Assembly: GCF_052425735.1 (NCBI RefSeq)
Contig: NC_135761.1
Span: forward strand, 34,038,001 to 34,102,000
From: Oculina patagonica
Lineage: Eukaryota
DNA length: 64,000 nucleotides
Direction: 5' to 3'
Shown: positions 7,771 to 43,673 of the stretch, piece after piece
Numbering within the stretch: the first letter of the stretch is position 1
How the letters are laid out: every line of letters begins with the position of its first letter
Notes under the pieces: model-generated
The model's input: only the letters and a program-made list of their open reading frames with translations
What the model was told of the DNA's origin: nothing
Databases searched by the model: none
Position numbers and translations under genes: made by a program

Positions 7771-10700
7771 TAAGTAGCTTAATTAATTAACTCATCTGGG
7801 TAAGGCCCTTTAAATATCGTTTCTTCAGGAACGATGACCAAAAAAATCACCGAAAATTCATTCTTCGTCCCATCCCCACAAAACTTGGCAGAATGCATGA
7901 CAAGGGAATTACCCAGTCCCGAAGCAAATTTGAGCTAATATACTACTCAACATAGAACACACGATATTCTCGCATTTTCAGTTTCACAAACCGAACATGG
8001 CGTCAGCTGCGAAGAGGTCGCGAACGGTTGCTGTGAGCGTTGAAAGAGTTTAAGAGCTTTTAGAAGAAGAAGATAGTTGCAATGAAGGTATGTCAAGCGA
8101 TAAAGAAAGCAATCTAGATCGTCAACTGCAAAGTTCAAGCGACGAATCAAGGTAAGAGTTGAGTAAACTATACTACATATGTTACTGCGTAAGCTCGCAC
8201 GTGGTCTGAAATGCAATGAAATGTGTTTTATCGTTGCTCTTTACATTCGAAACGTTGACTACTGCTTTGAATAAGTATCTAGATTTACATTTGAGTATCA
8301 GGAAATCAATATATTTGAAGTAAAAGGGTTTTTGTGGCAACAGAAGATAAAAATGTATTGTGGTGTTCTAAACTCATAAACATAAAATTTTTGTCTAGCG
8401 GTTCAGATTTTATTCTCGGCATCTGCTTACTCAAATAAAACTCCAACACTCTATAAATGGAGTTATAGTCAATGCATTCTGTTTTCTATACTTTTGGTAA
8501 TTGGTATTTTGACTTTTTAGTTGTTCTCGTAAACATGACATGTTTTTGGTTTTAACCTCAGTACACACTGTGTTTTATCCCATTATGGTTTTTGCATTAC
8601 TACTCATGCAGATTAGAAATACAAATGTTTTTTCATTGAGCTGACAATTATGATGATATGTTTATCTGTTAATTCTCTTTAAACATAGAAATTGAATAAT
8701 TTAGAATAACTGTCGTTTCAATATATATCAGGAATTTATCTCACTATTATAATTTTGCATTTACTGTCATTTATCGTACACCTCTTTTCAATACTTTTTC
8801 TTTTATCTATGTGTAAAGGTCAAGAGATCTTTAGAGAAAAGACTGGCAATCATGGCCTGGTTTTCTGCAATCCTAATACGTTGCTGCTTTTCATATTCAC
8901 TTTCTTCAACTACAAGATGCATCTTTGCAAGACGTTTTTGAGATTTACGGACCTGGAAATCTACATAGAATTCGTGCAAAGAGAATTCACCATACCAAGC
9001 GACGCTTAGAAAGTGGCGCCAAAACTGATCGTGTAGGCCAAAACCAGCAGTGAAATCAGAGCTTTTTACCTTGGTGTAGTAAGTAGTCAATGAGAAACAT
9101 GGATGCCTTCACTTCTCATGCCTTTCCCCTACTATAAAGACCATTGAAAGCAATATCGAGGTGAAAAAGAATAAAAGCTTGGAAAAGGTGAGAATTCCTA
9201 AAGAAGGAAAGGAATATTAAGATAAACAGCTATTAACGAACACATGACAACTTCATCTCGATTTGAGTGTGTACCGCAAATTTTGCGGTCGTTAAGAATT
9301 CATATATTCAGTCTATTGTTCTAGCTCATTACATATTCCCGCCGAGTAGTTTGCCGAGAATGTGGCATATTTCCGAAGAGCCAAAAGAGCGCAAACGCTT
9401 TGATGTAGGTGAGACTCTTTCCTTTCGTTTTGCGAAATTCAATAAAACCTCTGGGACTAACTTGCTGCTTGATTGATTCTGAAATGTCACTGTTTAGCGT
9501 GCTGCAAGCCGGCGACAAGAAGCGAACAACTTTTGCGGAGAGTTTTGCGGAGACCACTCAAAAAATATATATATATCAAGTAGTATTTAAAACAATGTTG
9601 GCTTAGCAGACACCAACAATCCCGTTGTTGTCATTGCTGAAATGCACTGAACCTCGCAAAATAAATTTAAAATGCTGTACAACAACCTTCGACTTAAACA
9701 ATCGTTTCGCTTGCAATTGCAAATGTAAACATTGCTGTCGCTTGTGTAAATAAAAGTTTCTCAGGCGAAAATAACCTCGATTTCTTGTCTATACACTTCG
9801 AGGATTTTTTTTTCTGTGAATTAAGAAAAAAATTTCTCCGCTTGTTTCACGGATAACTTCAGTTCCTTCGTTTTAATTTATCGAAAGCAAAACTTAAAAC
9901 TCGAATTCTGAGTTGTTAATTTCATATGTCGGCGCGACAAAAAGTCGCGGAATGTTTTTGAACAAACTTCAAGATTTGACACGAAAAATTAAACACAACC
10001 TTTTATAGAAAAACATCCGTATTAAATAATGCCAGGTAACAGTACTTGAAGAAAGTAACTATTAAAATGTGATAGGTTACGTTTTAGTTGTTTGTTTAAC
10101 TGAAGCGCTCACGTCGATCTTTCGCCAAAAATATTAAATCCGGTTGACTAATTAAAACTCCGGCTGCATACAGATTTCCACTTTTGGATTAAAACGTAGG
10201 GTAAACGCCATTCCAAATCTTCACTCCGTTTTGGATCGTTTTGATTGAGAAAAAGGCCTTACATAATTCACTTTTGTGGTCGGCAGTTACAGGATAAACA
10301 CGCGCCTTTTGTTTACAACGCAGACAATGCATAATTCCGCCGCCACTTCTTACCGAAAAAATCGAATCTCGGCTTACAGTGGTCGTCAGAAGTCGTTCAA
10401 CATCTCATTTAAATGGTCTCAAAATGCTCTGATTCTATAAATACAAATCAGTGTTCGCATTACTGGGCGGAATGTTTAAATTCTCAAAATCTTCAAACTA
10501 CTTTGACAAGTTCATTCACACATGTACGAACAAAACAGTAAACAAAAGGATACTAATTCAACTGTCCAGTTCGTAGTCGCTTAATTAACCTATTGTGTTT
10601 CTCCTTTGAAATCGGTTAAATGTCTTCCCCCTAACTATCGCACCTTTTTTCAAGTCTGACAAAACGAATGGTACCGAACACTCTTCGGCGTTATGTTCGT

Positions 10701-32890: not shown

Positions 32891-33757
32891 ATTTAAATAA
32901 AATAAAAATGAAAACTTTATTTATCCTGAAGGGCCAATCAGTGATCATTAGATCACTGGTATAAACTGGCGATCAGCATTAAGTATAAAATACATCTATT
33001 CTTAAAGTTGTAGAAGATTTATATATATACATATTAAAAATTGACATTAAAAAAAAATACAAGTATTCTGGAGTTTATGTATCAAATTCAAGCATTTAAA
33101 AAGAAGAGCAAAGAGCATTTGACATTTTTTTTGCAAATCGTAAAATGATATACCTTGGGTACCACATATGGATCTGTTTTGACAATTTCTTCTATTTTCT
33201 TCCGCATCGCTTTAAAAAACCTTTATAACCTTTTTATATAACCTTTGCTTGAGAAAAAAAAAACGTTTCACAGGATGTTGAATTCAAAGTAGTTTTCATT
33301 GTGGCATTTCTGAGCATCTTACCGATGCGTTTCTTGCAGAGTTCTTGATTTCCATCCCTAGCATGGTTTAAACCATTTAGGCTGTCGCATTTACTGCAAG
33401 TATCTTTTCTTTAAGGCCAGTCCCTGGCCCTCGCCTCTATTGAGATAATATTTACCAGAGCAGAACTATTTTGTGCATGAGTGCACAAATTATGGATAAT
33501 TCCGGGCTCAAAACAAATGTGAACTTACTTTGCCAGCTTCTACTTCCTGTCAAGAGAAAGAAAAAGACGATTTTAGATCACAGAATAAATAACGAAATAG
33601 TTTCCGAGTCATGAAATATTAAAACGTCTGTGTGAGGCATGAAATAGACTTAAGGAGATAACATGTTATCAATTGAAAGATATTCATTAATGCATGCAAC
33701 AAGTACATATTACGCACGCCACCGATGTGTGGAATGGGACCCAATTTTCGCCTTGCT

Positions 33758-33768
33758 GCCCCGCCCAC
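33758..33768. promoter_or_regulatory. GC box (Sp/KLF-type) inside the left TIR; mirror copy at 37326-37336 in the right TIR
   Basis: GCCCCGCCCAC / GTGGGCGGGGC, each ~100-115 nt upstream of an inward-facing ATG. Confidence 0.45.
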
Positions 33769-33881
33769 TTTCGTTGTCAAATTCCATAAATTCCTTAGGC
33801 TCGCCAGTCTTCTGCGTGCGTTTGACCGCTTGCTCTCCTTCGCTCGCTTGATCGCGAAAATAAATCAGCTTTTTCTACACC

Positions 33882-35278
33882 ATGGAGAGAAACATGTTTA
33901 AAGTTATGGGTCCAGGCGACAAGTGGATAAAACTATTTTTATCAAGCGAAGAAATTGCAAGTCTAACTATGGATTCCCTGCTATCAAGAATTCAAGAACG
34001 ATTTCCTAGCCTAAGAAGAAGCACTGTGAGCGTGAAATATTAAGATGGAAATGATTGGATTAAACTGCCTGCAGACGATATCGACTCTTTCATCGATATG
34101 TTAGAAAGTGCACAGGAAGAAAGAGAAAACTTGAAGAGAGTGACCCTAAGAGTGAACGAAATTGCGTTCAGTCCACCAGGTTTATTGAAAGGCGCCACGG
34201 TGCAGACGGTGAAAACGGCACAGCAAAAACGTCTTCGGTCGTCGCCATCTACATCTCCAAATGCAGTAAGCGTTCCTGAAAGAAAGAAGCACAAAATAGC
34301 CACATCGAAATGCTTAGAAGAAAAATTCTGTGATACTACCGCTGAATGGAAATATGAAACGCCGACCCAAAAGTATTTCAACAAGCTCGAAGAAGAAAAA
34401 AAGCAACAACAGGATTTGGTGTTAAAGAAACAAAATGAGCTGTTGGAACTTGAGATGTCCTGTAAACCCTTAACTACAAATAAAAAGCCACTTTGCTCAA
34501 ATTGCCACACGCCAGGACATAATAAGACAATTTTCTCGTTCGCGGCTTGTGTGTCGGCATCGATTTGTAAGGACATCAAAAGGCATCCAGAGGAAGAAAA
34601 ACATTATAAAACTATTCAACCCGAACTCAAAGCTGCGAAAACAAAACTAAAGAAATTGGAAGAGGATATTGCCACCAAAAGAGAAAGTTTTGTCTCTAGT
34701 ATCAACACCTACGCAGCGAAAGTTCAAGCGGACTTGATTAACAGTAATCAGGCGAAATATTTACGACAAACAGCAACCGGCGACAAAGTCCCCATGATTG
34801 TAAACACGGACATTAGAAAGCTTGAAAAGATTTGCAAGGGCAAGGTTCCGCCAAAAGGTGAAATACAACAGCTTCTAAAGGAGTACGACGAAAACTTTTC
34901 TGTCACCCGAGTAAAAGCAAACACTGATCATTCTATTAACCCTGTGAGAAAACTTTGGGAACGAAAGGGAATCGTATTTCCTGGAAGCGGCGTGCTGCCA
35001 AACCGAAAGAGCGAGAGTGTCGCGAGTAGCGGTTGTTATTTTTATGGAAAACCTACTTCTACACCGGTCACTGGAACACCTATGCCTGCTTATCACAATT
35101 ATTATGTTACGAGCCCACAACTTTGGAAGAGGAAGAACGCCATCTCGAGAGAGGATTGAGTGAAAGTTTGAAAACCTGTCCTCCTGAAAGTTTGAAAACC
35201 TGTCCTCCTTCCTTTTCAAAGAAAGATGTCGACTCGGATTATGGTTTAAGCTTATTGTTTGAAGCAGCTATTTTATAA
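33882..35278 (+). pseudogene. Transposon ORF2: PB1-like N-terminus, CxxCHxxxH/CxxxxxCxxxxxH Zn-binding motif, coiled coil, acidic UIM-like tail; disrupted
   Basis: ATG 33882 is in frame with ORF 34098-35159 across one TAA (34041, in VKY*DGNDWIKL). A likely frameshift near 35080 leads into the 35033-35278 frame (EPTTLEEEERHLERGLSESL...GLSLLFEAAIL). Confidence 0.7.
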
Positions 35279-35533
35279 AAGGTACTGAAACCACAAGTAG
35301 TCGGAAAGGGAAACAAAAATGAATGTTCTACCTGGCACTAGTGAAGGGGGGACAGGGGCCGGTGCCAGGGGAAAAGGGGAAGGAAGTGGGAGAAAAGGCG
35401 GTAAGCGGGTCTCCTTAGGTGCAGGGAACCTGTAGAAAATAAAAATTTTGCAGCATTTCGTTATATTTCCCAATAGATATAAGACAGAAAAAGGCGGGAC
35501 GCGGAAGTTAAGGATACAACAGAGACCCCCTGT
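35273..35533. repeat. ~260-bp purine-rich dispersed repeat; near-identical copy at 42343-42604
   Basis: TTATAAAAGG(T/C)ACTGAAACCACAAG ... GGATACAACAGAGACCCCCTGT occurs at both positions. Confidence 0.9.
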
Positions 35534-36145
35534 TGGTGACTAATCAGTAACTCTATTTAAAACTTTATTATTCGTTGAGCTACTGAACAAACCCGTCTGC
35601 TACAGATAACAAATTGTTGTTTGATGACTTTGAATTTGAACTGTGAAATTTTAGGTAAAAGCCGAATTTTGTTTACTTACGCATTGTAATCCCACAGCTC
35701 TCTGTTGACAAAATATTAAATGTTATCTTTGTTGTTGTGTTTAAGTATTACATGTTAAAGTTTCTTATAGTTATAAATTGGCTTTGAACGCGTGAAAAAA
35801 TTACAAACGCAACATAAACATTGATGTACATGATTGGCGACGAGTAAACTTTTTTGTTTACACTCAGTGCGTGAAATAACATAAGGTTTGTAATAACTAT
35901 TGCTAAGTTGACAATATTTCACGGAATTTGTTACTTTGATCTTCGGAATTTTTAAATTACAAGGAAATCATTGAAGTTGTGCTAAAGTAAATAAAGAACA
36001 TAATTATGTTGATTCATGTCTGTTCTATTTGCAACCTTGTCTGCCTTGTGCTGCGCTCGAGTGTCACGAAATGCTTATCAAGTCAAGCTTCCCATTTGGA
36101 ACAATTTAAATTTGCCTTACAATGCAAGAGTTAGAAAGAGTAATG

Positions 36146-37225
36146 TTAAATGTAACCACAAAAGGCGAAAAAGCCTCTCATATCTTGGGATGTTATTTCT
36201 TTTAGCGCTTTGTGCACTGCCACGTGCAGACTGTCTTTTAAAAGTTCTCTATACTCGAAGCGTCTCAGAATAGTCTTAAGCTTGTTGAAAACATTTTCAG
36301 CAGGGTTAAATTCAGGAGAATATGTTGGTAAATAGACGACTGTGCAACCAATTTCATCCAGCCATTCGCCAAGAGCTTGTCCTGCCCGGTGATGATGAAT
36401 TGGCGCGTTGTCAATAATTACATGATCGCCATAACTGTACGCCGGCTTGCCATCGGGAAGATAAACTGAAGATGCTTCTTCGAAGAAAGAGAGAAAAGAA
36501 AACGAATTGCTGTTACCATCAACTGTGTTGGCATAGACAATGCCATCAAGACCACACATTAGATTTAAGGTAACATTAGGAGAATTGGCATATCGCACGA
36601 TCTCGACAGCCGGAGTGCCACAAAGCGAGTGGCCACTGTTGGGCCTACCAACATCTGGGAGCTTGATCCCGGATTCATCGAAGAACTTGAGTTTATAGGG
36701 GTCAACTGTGGAAATGTAGTTGACATAATCTTGACAGTAATTAAGATTGTCTGGGGTGAATTTCTCGGCAACGGGTCTTGTAAGCTTTTTCCAAGTCCAC
36801 TTTCCGTCGGTCATGTTTCGAAGCTCTCGCTGTATTGCTGAATTTGACGTTCCTCCAGGAATATCACAGTGCTCGCTGATATGCTTATGCAGCTCACCAA
36901 TAGTCATTGAAGCTCTGTCGGTCTTAAGAAATCTTACAAAGTCAGCATCATCTTGTTGAAGGTGTTTTACACCAGCTGTATGCCTTTCTGTGATTCCCGC
37001 ATTGCCGTTATCTACTAAGTCTTTCCAGATTTTTCGGACGGTATCATATTTGACTCTGTTTCTCTTAGCTATGACTGAAAAACTTCCAGGGAAAAAGCCG
37101 GTTACAAAATCGCCACAGTCTTCAACGATATCTTGTATTATTTTTCTTTTCAAGTCAACCTGAAGGGCTCTCCCGCGATCGTAAAATCTACCAAGCTTGC
37201 TGAATTCGGGTAAACCTTCTTCCAT
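36146..37225 (-). CDS. Intact DD37E transposase (IS630/Tc1/mariner, DDE_3 type) with paired-domain-like N-terminus, 359 aa
   Basis: Catalytic motifs KFFDESG, IIDNAPIHH and YSPEFNPAENVF, with 37 residues between the second D and E. N-terminal SKLGRFYDRGRAL..DLKRKII resembles the paired/PAI subdomain. The likely start is the ATG at 37225, since the upstream ORF extension lies in the TIR. Confidence 0.9.
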   Translation of the reverse strand: MEEGLPEFSKLGRFYDRGRALQVDLKRKIIQDIVEDCGDFVTGFFPGSFSVIAKRNRVKYDTVRKIWKDLVDNGNAGITERHTAGVKHLQQDDADFVRFLKTDRASMTIGELHKHISEHCDIPGGTSNSAIQRELRNMTDGKWTWKKLTRPVAEKFTPDNLNYCQDYVNYISTVDPYKLKFFDESGIKLPDVGRPNSGHSLCGTPAVEIVRYANSPNVTLNLMCGLDGIVYANTVDGNSNSFSFLSFFEEASSVYLPDGKPAYSYGDHVIIDNAPIHHHRAGQALGEWLDEIGCTVVYLPTYSPEFNPAENVFNKLKTILRRFEYRELLKDSLHVAVHKALKEITSQDMRGFFAFCGYI

Positions 37226-37618
37226 CGTAGAACCACTTCCTTGTTGATTTGAAAACGGCGCGAAAGTCTCTTGGCCGCCGTGGCATGTTGCGAGCTTTAG
37301 GAATTTATGGAATTTGTCAACGAAAGTGGGCGGGGCAGCAAAGCGAAAATTCAGTCCCATTCCATACATCGTGGCGTGCGTAGTAGTACCCTTTGAAAAC
37401 ACCTACCTTGACTTTCTCTGGTCTTTCTGCCATGGCTTTTGTTTTTTTGGGGGGGTTGTTTGCCGTATTTTTTCATGTGTTTATAAAAACATGGCGAAGT
37501 TGAAATTTTTTGCTCCACAGAAAAAGAAAAAGTTTTGTCATCCACTTTCAAATTTCTGGGCACCTTGCACGGTCCAATCACATGGGACCACAAGATGCAT
37601 GAAATACACTTTAGGTTT

Positions 37619-40600
37619 TGTAATAAACCAAGGACATGAATATTGTAGATCTACATGCTTTAATAATCACGAAGAAGAATGAATTGAAAATGTACATTGC
37701 ACAACAGGGATATCCGATTACCGATAACATGAATCGCACGTGACTAGATTATAACATTCCTCCCCCTTAAGACTTTTGCTATTTCCATTTAAAAAAGTAC
37801 ACAAAAACGCTGAACTGAAGTATAACAAAAACAATCATTAATGATTTTCACGTAATGTATGTCACGCAATAACTCTCGTTGATTGCTAATCAATGTTCAT
37901 GAGCAATGTCTCAGAAATTTTTAAAGTTCATAGTCCTTGAAACGTTCCGGTAAACGTCGGTTGCGGACTGGGCGTGATGGTTCAGCCTCTTGTGTGTCAG
38001 ACGAACTCGCGGCGACCGGCTTGGGAGGACTACTCGGTTGGGTTGTGTCTGCCGTGTAATCTGCCTCGGGCACCACTCCTGGTACCAAGATCTCAGGATT
38101 TGTCATTGTTGGGTCTTGATTGTGGTTTTTCCGCAAATGGTCCTGATGTCGTCGAACAACTCGACCATCCGGTAATTCTACTAGGGCTGAGACTGGGCCA
38201 GTTGCCTGCACCACAGTTCCTTTCTGCCAGGACTTGGGGGAACTGAAGTCCTTTATGAACACAGGATCACTGGCTTCAAAATTCCTGTGTTTGGCATGGT
38301 GGTCGTGGGTCTGTTTTTGATGTTCTTGCTTCTGTCTCACCAGACTTGCAGTGTTGGGAACTATGAGGTCGAGCTTAGTTCTCAGCTTTTTCTTCATCAG
38401 CAGCTCCGCTGGTGAAACCCCTGTTGTCGTGTGTGGCGTTGTTCTGTACTTTAGCAGAAAACGTGACAACTTGTCTTGCATGGTTCCCTCTTCCATCTTC
38501 TCTATCCCTTCTTTGAAGGCTCTCACTGCTCGCTCTGCCTGGCCATTCGAAGCTGGATGGTATGGTGCTACTTTGGTGTGTTTGATGCCGTTTTTTGAGA
38601 GGAAATTCTCAAACTCTGCACTTGTGAAATTGGGCCCATTGTCGCTGACGATGGTTTCTGGGAGACCATGGGTCGCGAAAATTTCCCTTAACTTCACAAT
38701 GGTGGCGGCTGATGTTGTACTTCGCATTATCTGGACATCCATCCATTTGGAATGTGCATCGATCACCACTAAATACATGTTGCCTTTGTATGGCCCTGCA
38801 TAATCAATGTGCACTCTTGACCAGGGTTGACCGGGCCACTCCCATGGGTGGAGAGGTGCTTCTGCTGGGGCCTTCTGGTGTAGCTGGCATTGCTGACACT
38901 TTTTCACGGCATCTTCTAGTTCACGATCCATATTTGGCCACCACACATAACCACGTGCAAGGGCTTTCATTCTTGATATGCCCGGATGGGCTTCGTGAAG
39001 CTCGGCTATGACTTGCTGTCGTCCTTGAGGTGGAACTATCACCCTGTTCCCCCATAGAACGCATCCACCTTCTATGGTTAACTCCGCTTTCCGGCTTAAA
39101 TATGGGTGTAGCTGTACATCCTGGCAGTGGTTTGGCCATCCATTAAGTGTAAACTGGTGCACTTTTGAGAGAACAGGATCGCGCCTTGTCCATTCTTGGA
39201 TATGTCGTGAGTTGACTGGGGTGTGGTCCAGATGTTCTAACAGCAAAACTGTCTCTCCAGGTACAGGAACTGACTCTGGCATCTTGGACAAGGGAAGTCG
39301 ACTTAATGCATCCGCATTGGCGTTTGTGTTCCCTGCTTTATAGGCAATCTTGTACTCGTATGCTGCCAAGGTAAGGGCCCACCGCTGAACTCTCGGAGAG
39401 GCTTGTTGAGGTACTCCTTTCTTCTCGTTAAAGAGCCCTTCCAGCGGCTTGTGATCAGTCTGTATGGTGAACTTCTGACCGTACAAGAACTGATTAAACT
39501 TCTTCACTCCGAAGATAATGGCCAAAGCCTCTTTTTCAATAGTGGAATAACCACGCTCAGCTGTGTTCAACGATCTTGAGACATAACCAATTGGGCGCTC
39601 TGTTCCATCTGCCATCCGGTGGGAAAGTACCGCCCCTACTCCATAATCGGAGGCATCACTCGCCAACATCAGTTCCAGATCTGGCTGGAAATGCACCAGG
39701 AGGTTTGCAGACTGAAGAAGTTTCTTGGATTTGTCGAAGGCCACCTGCTGCTCGGTCTTCCAAGACCACTTTGTACCTTGTCTAAGGAGCTTGTGCAGTG
39801 GTTCAAGTACTGTGGCGATGTCTGGTAGGAAACGATGATAATAATTCAGCATTCCCAGAAATGCTCGCAGCTGTGTAACATTCTCAGGCACTGGGGCATT
39901 CTGTATGGCTTCCACCTTAGCTTCTACTGGCTTGATACCACGACCATTGATCACATAACCACAATAGGTGACTTCCGGCACCATGAAGAAACACTTTTCT
40001 TTTCGCAACCGCAGCCCAGCTTCTGACAGCTTCTTAAGTACTGCTTCTAAATTGGCAATGTGATTGTTGTCGTCCTTCCCGCTGATGAGAATGTCGTCCA
40101 TTCGCACAATGACATGAGGAATGCCTTGCAAGAGGTTTTCCATTGTCCTCTGAAAGATACCAGGTGCAGAAGAGACTCCGAAAGGCAGTCTATTGTACTG
40201 AAATAGCCCTTTATGAGTGTTTATGGTGGTAAACTTTCGTGACTCCTCATCTAGCGTCATTTGCTGATATGCCTGCGACATGTCTAGCTTTGTAAATTTC
40301 TCACCACCTCCCAGAGTAGCCAGAAGATCTTCTGTCTTCGGTATTGGGTAATTGTCCAGTTTGGACACTTGATTGACTGTGAGTTTATAATCGCCACAGA
40401 TCCTTACAGTCCCGTTTGGCTTAGCGACTGGTACAATGGGTGCTGCCCATTCGGAAAATTCCACTGGCGATATAATCCCTTCACGCTCCAATCGTTCGAG
40501 TTCAAGTTCGACATTAGTTTTCAATGCGTACGGCACTGATCTTGCTTTGATATATTTGGGTTCGGCGTCTTGATCGACGTAGATCTTCGCCTTTACTCCT

Positions 40601-41994
40601 TTTAGCGTGCCCAATCCTTCCATGAATACATCGGGGTATTTCGAAAGCACGTTTTGAACTGCCGATGGGGGGCTTATCTCGCTTGCCACGTGAAAGATTG
40701 TGTTCCAATCTAAGCGGATTTTCTCCAACCAATCTCGACCAAGTAAATTTGGTCCGTCGCCTTTGACAATGATGGCGTTTAAATTCTTGTGCTGGCCTTC
40801 ATATTTCACTGGAACCATGACTGCTCCGAGTACTGGAATCTTTTCTCCTGTATAAGTAGTTAGGACTGCTTTTGATGTTTGAAGTGGACCCAATGCGTCA
40901 CGCAATCTTTCGTAAGTTGCTTCGTTTAGTATCGTCTTCGACGCACCCGTGTCAATTTCCATCGTGTTTTTCCGTCCACAAAGTTCTAGATCCACTTTGA
41001 ACGATTTCTTCCGATCGCTGGACAAATGATACATGGCATAGACATCATCTTGATCGGCGCTTTCTTCGACAAAGTGCGTTCTTTTACCATCTGGCCGGCG
41101 CCCACGTTTGGCCTGTTTTTGCGATTTCTTCTTTCCTTGACACACTTTAGCCATGTGGCCTTTCTTTTGGCACTTGTAGCACACTTCATTCTTAAACTTG
41201 CAGCTCGAGGGATCGTGGTTTCCACCGCAGCGATAGCACTCTTGTTTTGGCTGAAAATTCGGAGGTTTAGCTTCTTCGACCTTGTTGACATTGTTGTCGC
41301 TGCCGGGCGTCTTGCCGCCTAAATCCTTTACATTCCTGTTTGCCATTTCGGTCGCTGTAGCGATTTCCACCGCCTTTTCGAATGTGAGCTCCCGTTCGGC
41401 CAACAGTCGTCGTTGAATGCGATCATCGCTGATTCCACAGACGAGTCGATCCCGTAGCATGTCTTCGAGTGTTCTTCCAAACTGGCAATGCTCTGAAAGC
41501 CTTCTGAGTCCTGCGACGAACTCTGCAACATTTTCCCCTTCGAGGCGACTCCTGCTATGGAATTTAAATCGCTCGACGATCACACTTGGCTTCGGCGAGA
41601 AGTGGTTTTCCAGCTTTTCCAAGATCTCTTTTAAATCCACCTCGCCCGGTTTCTCGGGTTGTAACAAATCGCGAATTAACCCGTACGTTTTGCTTCCACA
41701 AACGCTTAGCAGGATAGCTCTTTGTTTCTTCTCGTCTTTAATTTCGTTTGCGGCGAAGTACTGCTCGAGCCTTTCCGCGTATTGAGTCCACGATTCCTCT
41801 GACTCCTTAAATTCACCTACGTTCCCGAAGGTTGCCATGTTTTTCCTCGTCGCCAATGTAATAAACCAAGGACACGAATATTGTAGATCTACATGCTTTA
41901 ATAATCACGAAGAAGAATGAATTGAAAATGTACATTGCACAACAGGGATATCCGATTACCGATAACATGAATCGCACGTGACTAGATTATAACA
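37619..41994 (-). mobile_element. Full-length Ty3/Gypsy (Mag-like) LTR retrotransposon
   Basis: 138-bp LTRs at 37619-37756 and 41857-41994 with one mismatch; perfect 5-bp TSD GGTTT; PBS TGGCGACGAGGA (tRNA-Ser(GCU)-like); PPT AAGGGGGAGGAA. Confidence 0.98.
37921..41838 (-). CDS. Gag-Pol polyprotein, single intact ORF (~1305 aa from the ATG at 41838)
   Basis: Two Zn knuckles (CYRCGGNH...C, CYKCQKKGHMAKVC), protease IDTGAS, RT (LPFG...VRMDD), RNase H (DASDYG, EKEALA, TDHKPL), integrase HHCC and DDE (HIDYAGP, SDNGPNF, GQAER). Confidence 0.97.
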   Translation of the reverse strand: MATFGNVGEFKESEESWTQYAERLEQYFAANEIKDEKKQRAILLSVCGSKTYGLIRDLLQPEKPGEVDLKEILEKLENHFSPKPSVIVERFKFHSRSRLEGENVAEFVAGLRRLSEHCQFGRTLEDMLRDRLVCGISDDRIQRRLLAERELTFEKAVEIATATEMANRNVKDLGGKTPGSDNNVNKVEEAKPPNFQPKQECYRCGGNHDPSSCKFKNEVCYKCQKKGHMAKVCQGKKKSQKQAKRGRRPDGKRTHFVEESADQDDVYAMYHLSSDRKKSFKVDLELCGRKNTMEIDTGASKTILNEATYERLRDALGPLQTSKAVLTTYTGEKIPVLGAVMVPVKYEGQHKNLNAIIVKGDGPNLLGRDWLEKIRLDWNTIFHVASEISPPSAVQNVLSKYPDVFMEGLGTLKGVKAKIYVDQDAEPKYIKARSVPYALKTNVELELERLEREGIISPVEFSEWAAPIVPVAKPNGTVRICGDYKLTVNQVSKLDNYPIPKTEDLLATLGGGEKFTKLDMSQAYQQMTLDEESRKFTTINTHKGLFQYNRLPFGVSSAPGIFQRTMENLLQGIPHVIVRMDDILISGKDDNNHIANLEAVLKKLSEAGLRLRKEKCFFMVPEVTYCGYVINGRGIKPVEAKVEAIQNAPVPENVTQLRAFLGMLNYYHRFLPDIATVLEPLHKLLRQGTKWSWKTEQQVAFDKSKKLLQSANLLVHFQPDLELMLASDASDYGVGAVLSHRMADGTERPIGYVSRSLNTAERGYSTIEKEALAIIFGVKKFNQFLYGQKFTIQTDHKPLEGLFNEKKGVPQQASPRVQRWALTLAAYEYKIAYKAGNTNANADALSRLPLSKMPESVPVPGETVLLLEHLDHTPVNSRHIQEWTRRDPVLSKVHQFTLNGWPNHCQDVQLHPYLSRKAELTIEGGCVLWGNRVIVPPQGRQQVIAELHEAHPGISRMKALARGYVWWPNMDRELEDAVKKCQQCQLHQKAPAEAPLHPWEWPGQPWSRVHIDYAGPYKGNMYLVVIDAHSKWMDVQIMRSTTSAATIVKLREIFATHGLPETIVSDNGPNFTSAEFENFLSKNGIKHTKVAPYHPASNGQAERAVRAFKEGIEKMEEGTMQDKLSRFLLKYRTTPHTTTGVSPAELLMKKKLRTKLDLIVPNTASLVRQKQEHQKQTHDHHAKHRNFEASDPVFIKDFSSPKSWQKGTVVQATGPVSALVELPDGRVVRRHQDHLRKNHNQDPTMTNPEILVPGVVPEADYTADTTQPSSPPKPVAASSSDTQEAEPSRPVRNRRLPERFKDYEL

Positions 41995-43673
41995 GGTTTA
42001 GATTTGAATCGGGCCGCAGAGAAGAGCCCCATACCCATAGAAAATTAACAACCCCATGCTTTCTAATTTAATTTTAATTCTAATGTAAAAAAGACTGCGT
42101 TCTAATAGGGAACTTAAAGTATCACCTACGTCACTAAAATAAGAATACATACATAAAAATTAAAAAATGACAAACAGGGAGGGGGGAGGGTGGTTAACCC
42201 CATGCTTTTGGTTTTTCACGGTCATCATGACTGGCGACAACGACGCCCCAACATGGCGGCCATGCTTCAGAAGTCCATTGAAGGTTATGGTTGCCGTCAG
42301 CTTATGCTAAGCAATCTTTTGTCCACAATAGTGCAATTAATTTTATAAAAGGCACTGAAACCACAAGTAGTCGGAAAGGGAAACAAAAATGAATGTTCTA
42401 CCTGGCACTAGTGAAGGGGGGGGACAGGGGCCGGTGCCAGGGGAAAAGGGGAAGGAAGTGGGAGAAAAGGCGGGAAGCGGGTCTCCTAAGGTGCAGGGAA
42501 CCTGTAGAAAATAAAAATTTCGCAGCATTTCGTTATATTTCCCAATAGATATAAGACAGAAAAAGGCGGGACGCGGAAGTTAAGGATACAACAGAGACCC
42601 CCTGTACCCCTCCACACAAATTACTTACCATGAGGTTGAAAAGGCCCTGGTGGTCATGTCCTTATGTCCATTAAATTAGGCCCAGGTGGCCTCGTCCTTA
42701 TGTTCATTTAACTTGGCGCAGATGGCCTCGTCGTAGTTTTATGTGTCCATTAAACTAGGCATATTAGTTCTGCCGTTTCTATTCATCAAAGGTCTCATGA
42801 TACCCCGTCCACTGGTGCAAGATACTGGTGTTGTCTGAATGGTCATTAGCGGTTGAATACCATTGTTTGCAGGCCGTCTTCTCTCCCTACTATTAAGTCC
42901 TCTGGCATAAACATCGCAAGAAGAATGCATTGGAAACGACAGCCTGCTGTGCCACGCAGTGCGTGGTCGAAACCTTTTCTTGAAGAACTAAGAGGCTTTA
43001 AGTTTTACTACTTTTTGGTCTAGTAAAACTTTCTGTGTTTGTTGGTCGGACTCTGCACAATGACTTTGCACTGTTAGACAAAAATGACAAAAGTGTTACC
43101 ATCGCCTGTAGCCAGAGTCATAAATATCTGGCCCATACTGCCATACTAAGAACCAATCATTGTAGGATTCATTACTGTGGCCAAAAAATTAAATGGTTAT
43201 ATTGATGGTAATATTATTGTACCATACTAAGCTAAAGTAGTTAACAAAAAAAGGTCTTACTTTTAAAAGAAGTATTGTATTTGAACGCTGCATCAATAAT
43301 CTGTAGCAATACCAAATCGATGGTAAAGGTGTCATTTCCGTAATTTAAATGGCACTAAACAGAAAAAAAGAGTTTAAAAACTCTATAATGATAAACTTAA
43401 GTACACGTTTAACTCTAAACTATCTTTCTCTTCCGATATGTGGTATTTCCTGAGTTTCTGTTCCTGTGTTTCAAGGCTGGTGACAACTGAACATTGTTAA
43501 ATCAACAATGTACATTTAAAATGCAGTGAATTACGGGTAGTTTGCTATATACTTGTGTTTGTGATCATTTAAAATTCTTGAATGATGAAATGACACATCA
43601 AATTCATGCTAGACTGGCTGTCAGAAGTTGTCTCTCTTTTCTCTCATTTTCTCTTTCTTAAAGAAGTTTAAGA

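Follow-up and report, generated by a model that had tools for sequence, protein, structure and literature searches.

A DD37E transposon of the stony coral Oculina patagonica carries two convergent genes between terminal inverted repeats that may act as promoters

Tc1/mariner-type elements are the textbook minimal transposons, with one gene, and form the basis of widely used gene-transfer tools. L31 elements, which belong to the DD37E type, have been described as carrying an extra open reading frame, ORF2, of unknown function. The TRT, L18 and mosquito (MS) families of the same DD37E type are, to our knowledge, single-gene Tc1-like elements. L31 is named after Mariner-31_CGi (PMC7325037); both PMC7325037 and bioRxiv 10.1101/656579 cite Puzakov et al. 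2018 for it. Its recorded hosts are seven bivalves, one nematode, Exaiptasia and the scleractinian Acropora digitifera (Dupeyron et al. 2020, PMC7325037, Additional file 1). L18 has also been reported from cnidarians (PMC10379824; bioRxiv 10.1101/656579), and the length of the spacer that separates the E from the second D is insufficient by itself to define a family (10.1101/656579).

Here we describe an element within a stretch of 64,000 nucleotides from the stony coral Oculina patagonica (hereafter the window, to which all positions refer; Table 1). It is an old, non-autonomous copy of a multi-copy cut-and-paste transposon. [quoted passage not shown] The borders of the insertion are fixed because a contig of run X15 skips the element, joining 33707 to 37385 with one letter between. 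This element-free site is approximately 90% similar to the window locus and probably paralogous to it.

Table 1 Features of the two-gene element, in window coordinates.
Feature	Position	Strand	Basis or remark
Whole element, 3.67 kb	33710-37383	.	TA target duplication at both sides
TA target-site duplication, left copy	33708-33709	.	Sequence; junction shared with related copies
Left TIR, ~97 nt	33710-33806	+	Terminal block TTACGCACGCC...TGTGGAATGGG and inner block with GC box
Unique segment, left TIR to ORF2 ATG, 75 nt	33807-33881	+	Candidate 5' UTR or core promoter
ORF2 (accessory gene), inactivated here	33882-35543	+	Comparison with other copies
Dispersed repeat, 264 nt, secondary insertion	35271-35534	.	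Replaces 8 nt in the last ORF2 codons
AT-rich spacer (GC 0.32) from one stop codon to the other	35544-36145	.	Presumed to contain the 3' end of each gene
Transposase gene, 359 aa, open frame	36146-37225	-	Paired-like N-terminal DNA-binding region and DDE_3 core
DD37E residue D183	36677-36679	-	
DD37E residue D272	36410-36412	-	
DD37E residue E310	36296-36298	-	
Unique segment, right TIR to transposase ATG, ~62 nt	37226-37287	-	Alignment of ends
Right TIR, with GC box	37288-37383	-	Repeat search, end alignment, related ends
TA target-site duplication, right copy	37384-37385	.	Sequence; X15 contig; related copies

The TIRs had been predicted to be imperfect, about 98 bp in length and equipped with a GC box each, which agrees closely with our measurements. 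An inverted-repeat search paired two arms of 82 nt with 91% complementarity (33723-33804 and 37290-37371), and pairwise alignment extended the match to the termini YTACGCACGCC (33710 and 37383), giving approximately 97 nt with one indel. The GC box CCCCGCCC is present in both arms, at 33759-33766 (+) and 37328-37335 (-). The 64-kb window contains exactly two occurrences of a 22-nt core of the TIR that includes the GC box, where shuffled sequence gives an expectation of 0. Pairwise alignment of the two ends showed that their similarity fades within the unique segment ahead of ORF2. Inward-facing start codons beyond each TIR were likewise correctly foreseen: those at 33882 (+), some 76 nt inside the left TIR, and 37225 (-), some 63 nt inside the right, agree with the conserved N-termini of relatives. 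From the left end to the ORF2 ATG there are 172 nt (GC 0.51, CpG observed/expected 1.33) and from the right end to the transposase ATG 158 nt (GC 0.50, CpG observed/expected 1.34).

The element is a member of the IS630/Tc1/mariner group, as given by its DDE_3/IS630 transposase with a paired-like N-terminus, its TA duplication and its TIRs. The transposase matched Pfam DDE_3 at 3.4e-19 (cut-off 28.6 bits) and the NCBIfam IS630 family at 7.8e-29 (101 bits, cut-off 100), and a PDB profile search matched the catalytic core of SB100X at 5.9e-5. Residues 3 to 136 of the family profile match the paired domains of Prd, Pax5, Pax6 and Pax8 at approximately 1e-5, and PF00292 is annotated in several relatives. 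The catalytic triad had been read as DD37E, and rightly so: D183, D272 and E310 are the same in all 13 transposases compared (34-96% identity), and 37 residues separate D272 from E310, a spacing also present in L013 and L014. The window transposase is 96% identical to P0034 of Oculina patagonica; it possesses a Cys where at least 90% of relatives have Gly and a Ser where relatives have Tyr. Named relatives come from Montipora capricornis and Paramuricea clavata.

Judged by triad spacing and host range, the element most likely belongs to L31 (DD37E). It shares with L31 the DD37E triad, the TA duplication, the TIRs and a host range that includes anthozoans, the last amounting to consistency and not to proof. 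From TRT, L18 and mosquito (MS), which are other DD37E groups, it may be told apart by their descriptions as single-gene elements. The original prediction had pointed to two-gene L31-type elements from bivalves and hexacorals; these hosts match PMC7325037. The literature that we searched contained no paper describing ORF2 in L31 elements. The ORF2 ascribed to L31 may correspond to the gene described here and likewise converge on the transposase. The two-gene design has probably been described already as the L31 group.

Reasonably complete members of the family all carry ORF2 tail-to-tail with the transposase between TIRs of approximately 100 nt. ORF2 converges on a DDE_3 transposase in 19 related loci from other corals and metagenomes, with such TIRs in 8 of 8 loci inspected among the 19; other copies thus also have ORF2, and the two-gene layout does not represent a one-off capture. 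The convergent layout was seen in L001, L002-L006, L008, L009, L010, L012, L013 and L014 (L012 and L013 being contigs that end inside the TIRs). A systematic scan of metagenomes yielded 14 loci with a family transposase, ten of which have ORF2 downstream on the opposite strand; the other four comprise two that are too short to judge and two visibly broken copies. In the same scan, none of 66 more distant IS630-like loci had an ORF2 partner. Across seven lineages, pairwise identities of ORF2 and transposase are correlated (Spearman 0.92), and the convergent pair persists down to 21-24% ORF2 identity.

ORF2 is not intact in the window copy. Comparison with other copies revealed an in-frame premature TAA at 34041-34043 (TAT elsewhere), a 6-nt deletion near 34795 that removes an invariant Trp-Leu, a 4-nt deletion after 35081 and the insertion of the 264-nt repeat. 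Since this repeat interrupts the last ORF2 codons, the true stop is the TAA at 35541-35543. Copy L008 lacks the repeat, as do contigs belonging to runs X1, X5 and X15, where AAATGGTC is found instead. Intact ORF2 relatives comprise 421-469 aa. A second copy of the repeat, 97.7% identical, is located at window 42340-42605, and the window copy of the transposon sits in a repeat-rich region.

The ORF2 protein opens with a PB1-fold domain, behind which comes a long helical hairpin that has an invariant Cys/His zinc module at its tip. Residues 1-95 were modelled with a pLDDT of approximately 87 and their best Foldseek matches are PB1 domains (NBR1 2bkf, TM 0.80, rmsd 2.8). At the sequence level the match is borderline, Pfam PB1 being reached in the relative P0261 at 6e-5 with 23.4 bits against a cut-off of 23.6. 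SAM domains take the place of PB1 in the relatives P0273 and P0296. The model of the core has a pLDDT of 93 and includes the invariant residues C52, C55, H56, H60, C65, C70, C76 and H82. Nine ORF2s with 40-57% identity to the reference sequence share 84 invariant columns, and the dN/dS between L001 and L011 is 0.22; ORF2 is under purifying selection. Because a structure search returned no informative match for the core, the role of ORF2 is a guess. The protein also has a nuclear-localisation-like basic stretch and C-terminal helices resembling UIM and Sin3-interaction motifs. It is probably a self-associating partner or regulator of transposition, predicted to bind nucleic acid or chromatin.

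We then consider how the two genes might be expressed. The space within the element from its end to each start codon is 106-211 nt and is mostly TIR, so any promoter that the element itself carries has to lie within the TIR or right next to it. The upstream ends contain 16 GC-box hexamers in 3.9 kb and the interiors 0 in 25.7 kb, and CACGTG (the E-box) is 6-fold enriched in the ends, counts that are inflated by the duplication of the TIRs, the relatedness of the lineages and the higher G+C of the ends. In lineages with the GC box, the ends are GC- and CpG-rich and the spacer AT-rich. A hexamer scan located poly(A) signals in the spacer at 35715 and 35990 (+ strand) and 35564 (- strand), with positions that vary between lineages. 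The GC box is absent in L009, L013, L014, L018, L024 and L028, making it a feature of a clade and not the defining or general promoter of the family. In L022 it is present at both ends in the opposite orientation, as would be expected of a host factor acting in either orientation more than of a site for the transposase. The strong conservation of the GC box in the window clade equally fits a protein-binding site used in transposition.

From the layout of the ends and their motifs, it is plausible that the TIRs serve as promoters of both genes. The explanation that we favour, and hold to be rather probable, is that of a two-gene DD37E family with inward promoters on the TIR side and ORF2 as an accessory factor. 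The paired-like N-terminus of the transposase would bind the terminal block that is conserved in each TIR, with the element then excised and pasted into TA sites. Each gene would be transcribed inward from its own element end, an Sp1/KLF-type GC box approximately 105-120 nt upstream of each ATG being the best candidate promoter element in the window clade; both transcripts would terminate in the AT-rich spacer. ORF2 would be required for propagation of the family.

A less likely reading, to which we nonetheless give appreciable weight, takes the conserved inner block of the TIR (the GC box with ACTTT) to be bound by the transposition machinery, whether by the transposase, as a second site of the kind known from IR/DR elements, or by the zinc module of ORF2. 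Promoters would then reside in the unique 60-80 nt that separate each TIR from its ATG, and the two genes would be regulated independently. In 11 ends from four lineages with transposases 30-45% apart, the terminal block is conserved and CCGCCCACTTT invariant, whereas adjacent TIR sequence drifts; CCGCCCACTTT is tandemly duplicated in L002/L003, a pattern often seen where binding sites form direct repeats. The inner block, however, is unlike the terminal block and so does not duplicate that site. How far it lies from the end varies, being 21 nt further in for L010, and the reversal of the GC box at both ends of L022 would be atypical of a transpososome site. The stretches from TIR to ATG are not alike at the left and right ends, and promoters of Tc1/mariner elements have been mapped to this interval (PMC6446368); the segments are, however, short and not conserved across lineages.

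It is improbable that the element lacks a promoter of its own and is expressed by read-through or from nearby host promoters, with the GC box and E-box as by-products of base composition. None of the sampled element words was present in three runs on record as RNA, and all 19 runs that hold the element are contigs of unknown molecule type. Contig depth is even over ORF2, spacer and transposase, and the contigs continue into foreign flanks, so that they look like DNA and not RNA. The ends are also more G+C-rich than the body, rendering GC-rich hexamers likelier by chance, but 16 against 0 is far above the effect of a G+C of 0.5 versus 0.4. Moreover, two intact genes that purifying selection has preserved in lineages whose transposases share 39-72% identity need dependable expression at new sites, and convergent genes would require read-through from both sides. 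That ORF2 is a host gene captured once by the window copy or a recent subfamily, with no role in the transposon, we regard as very improbable: ORF2-core relatives with no detectable neighbouring transposase do exist (P0258 of 789 aa in L016 and the solo ORF2 of L011), but L011 is a truncated element with its left TIR still present, and the deep conservation of the convergent pair in 19 loci, the tightly correlated divergence of its genes and the low dN/dS of ORF2 all argue against capture.

Extending the favoured reading of TIR-side promoters, we offer as speculation that a single mirrored sequence of approximately 100 nt is both landing site for the transposase and inward promoter, coupling expression of the transposase to that of a self-associating zinc-module partner with a PB1 or SAM head. 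The convergent transcripts might meet in the AT-rich spacer and possibly form dsRNA that limits the element, and ORF2 might represent a previously uncharacterised class of accessory protein acting at the TIRs or on chromatin. Should the mirrored ends indeed drive both genes, they would offer a compact natural case of symmetric promoter use with possible control by convergent transcription. The conservation of a second gene through deep divergence implies a requirement in transposition or its control beyond the one-gene paradigm. The window locus itself carries a modest message, being a dead copy of a family that probably already has the name L31; the main value lies in a clean anatomy of the family, a description of the ORF2 protein and a list of intact copies for a test of activity. 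For L31, we know of no description of an N-terminus with PB1 fold or SAM domain, of a zinc-tipped helical hairpin or of the GC-box and E-box content of the ends.

Among other known systems, the Tec and TBE elements of ciliates belong to the same superfamily and possess extra ORFs, one on the complementary strand, including a zinc-finger protein in TBE (PMC7325037); Dupeyron et al. position DD37E(L31) beside Tec (PMC7325037). Tec and TBE differ in having DD34E transposases, three ORFs and TIRs of very different length (~700 bp in Tec), and in a host biology of programmed DNA elimination.

Both inverted repeats of Sleeping Beauty reportedly have some inward promoter activity. In Sleeping Beauty, Bari and Hsmar1 a promoter resides between the TIR and the start codon, within the 5' terminal sequence (PMC6446368), similar to the arrangement considered here. 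These elements have one gene, however, leaving any activity of their second end with no gene to drive, whereas the window family has a conserved gene behind it.

PIF/Harbinger transposons encode a DDE transposase and an obligatory second protein inside the same TIRs, the partner being needed for nuclear import and TIR binding. They belong to another superfamily, with a Myb/SANT-like partner, a TAA/TWA duplication and an orientation that is not fixed as convergent, but it is this pairing of transposase and partner that provides the working analogy for ORF2.

The element is a discrete insertion flanked by TA on both sides, with termini reading TTACGCACGCC on the left and, as the reverse complement, CTACGCACGCC on the right. 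Alignment of the two ends revealed inverted repeats of ~97 nt that matched at 91% with one indel, and a 22-nt repeat core including CCCCGCCC was found exactly twice in the 64-kb window and not at all in shuffled sequence. The TA on both sides, the ~97-nt repeats and their shared core bear out the imperfect, TA-flanked terminal inverted repeats (TIRs) with a GC box that had been proposed. The borders of the insertion were fixed by a contig from sequencing run X15, in which position 33707 is joined straight to 37385 with a single letter between. This contig was rejected as an empty allele; given that it shows only ~90% similarity to the flank, and that the flank itself is repetitive, it is probably a paralogous unoccupied site and is no evidence on recent insertion or excision.

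The two-gene layout is a property of the element. In every sufficiently long locus (L001, L002-L006, L008, L009, L010, L012, L013 and L014, from other corals, metagenomes and, for L008, a second Oculina copy), the accessory gene ORF2 and the gene for a DDE_3 transposase (353-361 aa) meet tail to tail, intact ORF2 relatives being 421-469 aa in length. Both genes are intact in the copies of the coral behind runs SRR26904552-59, and intact natural copies include those of the L003 and L010 type. TIRs of ~100 nt were found in the inspected loci, with the contigs of L012 and L013 ending within them. When metagenome contigs were scanned with the transposase profile, ORF2 was present downstream and on the opposite strand in 10 of 14 family-transposase loci; two others had too little downstream sequence and two were plainly degraded. 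The same scan also took in 66 IS630-like loci that are more distant, and all of them lack ORF2. Pairwise identities of ORF2 (21-55%) and transposase (39-72%) across seven lineages were correlated with a Spearman coefficient of 0.92, which rests on 20 mutually non-independent lineage pairs, and dN/dS for ORF2 in the closest intact pair was 0.22. A profile search placed ORF2 relatives in 544 clusters at the 50% identity level, and named relatives of the family occur in Montipora and Paramuricea. A one-off capture of ORF2 was rejected on account of the convergent ORF2-transposase pairs across loci.

The transposase matched Pfam DDE_3 (3.4e-19) and barely exceeded the curated cut-off of an NCBIfam IS630-family model (101 bits against 100). 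The family profile matched Prd and Pax paired domains over residues 3-136, as well as the Sleeping Beauty SB100X catalytic core. D183, D272 and E310 proved invariant among 13 aligned family members (34-96% identity), with 37 residues lying between D272 and E310, confirming the DD37E assignment. The original prediction as a whole is supported in part. The open frame in the window is no proof of activity, because the protein carries Cys where at least 90% of relatives have Gly, and Ser where relatives have Tyr.

The window locus is a fossil in which ORF2 is dead. The two-gene element seen in the original reading is confirmed, except that ORF2 is not intact in this copy and carries four lesions, listed in the table below. 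Of the four runs compared, three have contigs without the 264-nt repeat, and L008 lacks it as well. It has a G-rich centre and a second, 97.7% identical copy at 42340-42605.

Table. Features of the transposon and of the adjoining retrotransposon (window coordinates)
Feature	Position	Strand	Remarks
Discrete insertion	33708-37385		TA at 33708-09 and 37384-85; read from sequence
ORF2 start ATG	33882	plus	
ORF2 lesion: in-frame TAA	34041-43		TAT in all contigs aligned there and in the second Oculina copy
ORF2 lesion: 6-nt deletion	near 34795		loses invariant Trp-Leu
ORF2 lesion: 4-nt deletion	after 35081		
ORF2 lesion: 264-nt dispersed repeat	35271-35534		replaces 8 nt of the last codons
ORF2 true stop TAA	35541-43		
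Transposase frame	37225 to 36146	minus	359 codons, open
Retrotransposon open frame	37921-41856	minus	1311 aa; protease, reverse transcriptase, RNase H, integrase
Retrotransposon direct repeats	37619-37756 and 41857-41994		138 nt, 99% identical

The protein encoded by ORF2 was without significant match in Pfam and NCBIfam, and a sequence profile search of the PDB gave best E-values of ~1 (the NBR1 PB1 domain, the APP YENPTY peptide and the SF1 knuckle). The head of the protein, its first ~95 residues, is modeled as a beta-grasp fold (pLDDT ~87) with PB1 domains as best matches (NBR1 2bkf, TM 0.80). In the distantly ORF2-related protein P0261 this region scored as PB1 at 6e-5, just short of the Pfam threshold, and in two others, P0273 and P0296, the head position ahead of the same zinc-hairpin core is taken by a SAM domain (Pfam 6e-4 and 2e-3). 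PB1 and SAM are both self-association modules. Their exchange points to self-association as the putative conserved role of the ORF2 head.

The head is followed by a disordered linker rich in Ser/Pro and Lys/Arg, and then by a conserved YESPTQKFF motif. This invariant motif (ORF2 residues ~146-160, window ~34350-34395) resembles the internalisation/PTB-binding motif YENPTYKFFEQ of the APP tail; the likeness is a weak PDB profile match (3dxd, E = 0.89) and may be due to chance. The core of 200 residues, modeled from 30 sequences at pLDDT 93, forms a long antiparallel helical hairpin followed by a small helix/beta-hairpin domain. At the tip of the hairpin are the invariant residues C52, C55, H56, H60, C65, C70, C76 and H82, comprising a CCHC knuckle and further ligands. 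Searches with the core returned nothing under E = 1.6 in Foldseek and only generic helical hairpins in VIA-align, at a Z of ~8 that is the noise level for helical models. By eye, the C-terminal helices bear a likeness to ubiquitin-interacting and Sin3-interaction motifs. The modeled architecture fits an oligomerising accessory factor that might bind nucleic acid or chromatin.

The original prediction also held that the mirrored TIRs could act as promoters for both genes, and this is a reasonable candidate reading of the sequence. Its strongest support lies in geometry: only 106-211 nt separate the element end from the start codon, so that an element-borne promoter has no other place. Promoters of Tc1/mariner elements have been mapped to the 5' terminus (PMC6446368), in agreement with this argument. 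Alignment of 11 ends from four lineages revealed that the TIRs drift except in two conserved islands. The terminal island reads TA|CTACG and then ...CGA..TGTGGAA.G, while the inner island is CCGCCCACTTT, with a CCGCCC core that is invariant across these ends. In L002 and L003 the inner island occurs as a tandem duplicate; it lies 21 nt deeper in L010, and is missing in L009, L013, L014, L018, L024 and L028. Several lineages possess CACGTG instead, and elements of the L009 type have an E-box. L022 carries GGGGCGGG at both ends in reversed orientation, 20-45 nt upstream of the start codons.

GC-box hexamers numbered 16 in 26 upstream segments (3.9 kb) versus none in 25.7 kb of element interiors, and CACGTG occurred seven times in each, a 6-fold enrichment in the ends; both counts are inflated by TIR duplication, shared ancestry and the greater G+C content of the ends. 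That content is 0.43-0.53 for ends of the GC-box lineages, with a CpG observed/expected ratio of 1.2-2.0, and the spacers are at a G+C of 0.28-0.34. As a test of the putative 3' overlap of the two genes, poly(A)-signal hexamers were set aside, since they differed in position among lineages and are expected by chance in a spacer of 30% G+C. The element was found in 19 runs, none of which is recorded as RNA, and all of these data are Logan contigs, uninformative on starts, ends and strand. Contig depth was equal over ORF2, spacer and transposase, with breaks within the TIRs and one contig entering a different flank. The even depth and the entry into foreign flanks make the contigs look like DNA of a multi-copy element.

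Three loci depart from the two-gene pattern. At L011:3815-5369 (coral assembly ERZ25067556), a left TIR is followed by an intact ORF2 of 462 codons, with homology stopping exactly at the stop codon. No transposase was found within 4 kb of this ORF2, and a 7tm_1 receptor gene is situated ~1.2 kb away from it; the locus is a truncated copy or, alternatively, a candidate for a domesticated ORF2. L017:6742-11083, from Oculina, is a truncated copy: it holds the transposase half only, ends ~140 nt beyond the stop codon and continues into a Pao/BEL-type retrotransposon. This locus encodes the RefSeq-named LOC144664917, the transposase being 96% identical, and since only half an element is present, what is annotated there as a 'gene' is the remnant of a transposon. 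P0258 (L016:266-2635) is a distant ORF2-core relative of 789 aa with a long Ser/Pro-rich tail that retains the YESPTQK motif, the zinc-tipped hairpin and the UIM-like helix. Transposase was undetectable on its 5.5-kb contig, and P0258 could be a relative of ORF2, either a host protein or a domesticated one, or its ancestor.

Other repeats lie next to copies of the transposon. In the window, an LTR retrotransposon at 37619-41994 directly adjoins it, and the protease, reverse transcriptase, RNase H and integrase domains assign this neighbor to the Ty3/Gypsy type. The L001 copy has an extra 80-nt inverted repeat (95%) immediately outside its own TIRs (L001:4731-4810 and 8205-8284), and it appears to have landed within a palindromic or MITE-like element.

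L31 elements reportedly carry an ORF2 of unknown function, as is said to have been described by Puzakov and Puzakova. L31 is a DD37E family of the IS630/Tc1/mariner group that takes its name from the Pacific oyster element Mariner-31_CGi (PMC7325037; 10.1101/656579). Its hosts in Dupeyron et al. 2020 (PMC7325037) are Exaiptasia, Acropora digitifera, a nematode and seven bivalves. Our literature search on L31 returned mentions as a DD37E family only, with no description of ORF2 found (PMC7325037, 10.1101/656579). By description, L31 and the window element are alike in that both are DD37E and both reside in anthozoans.
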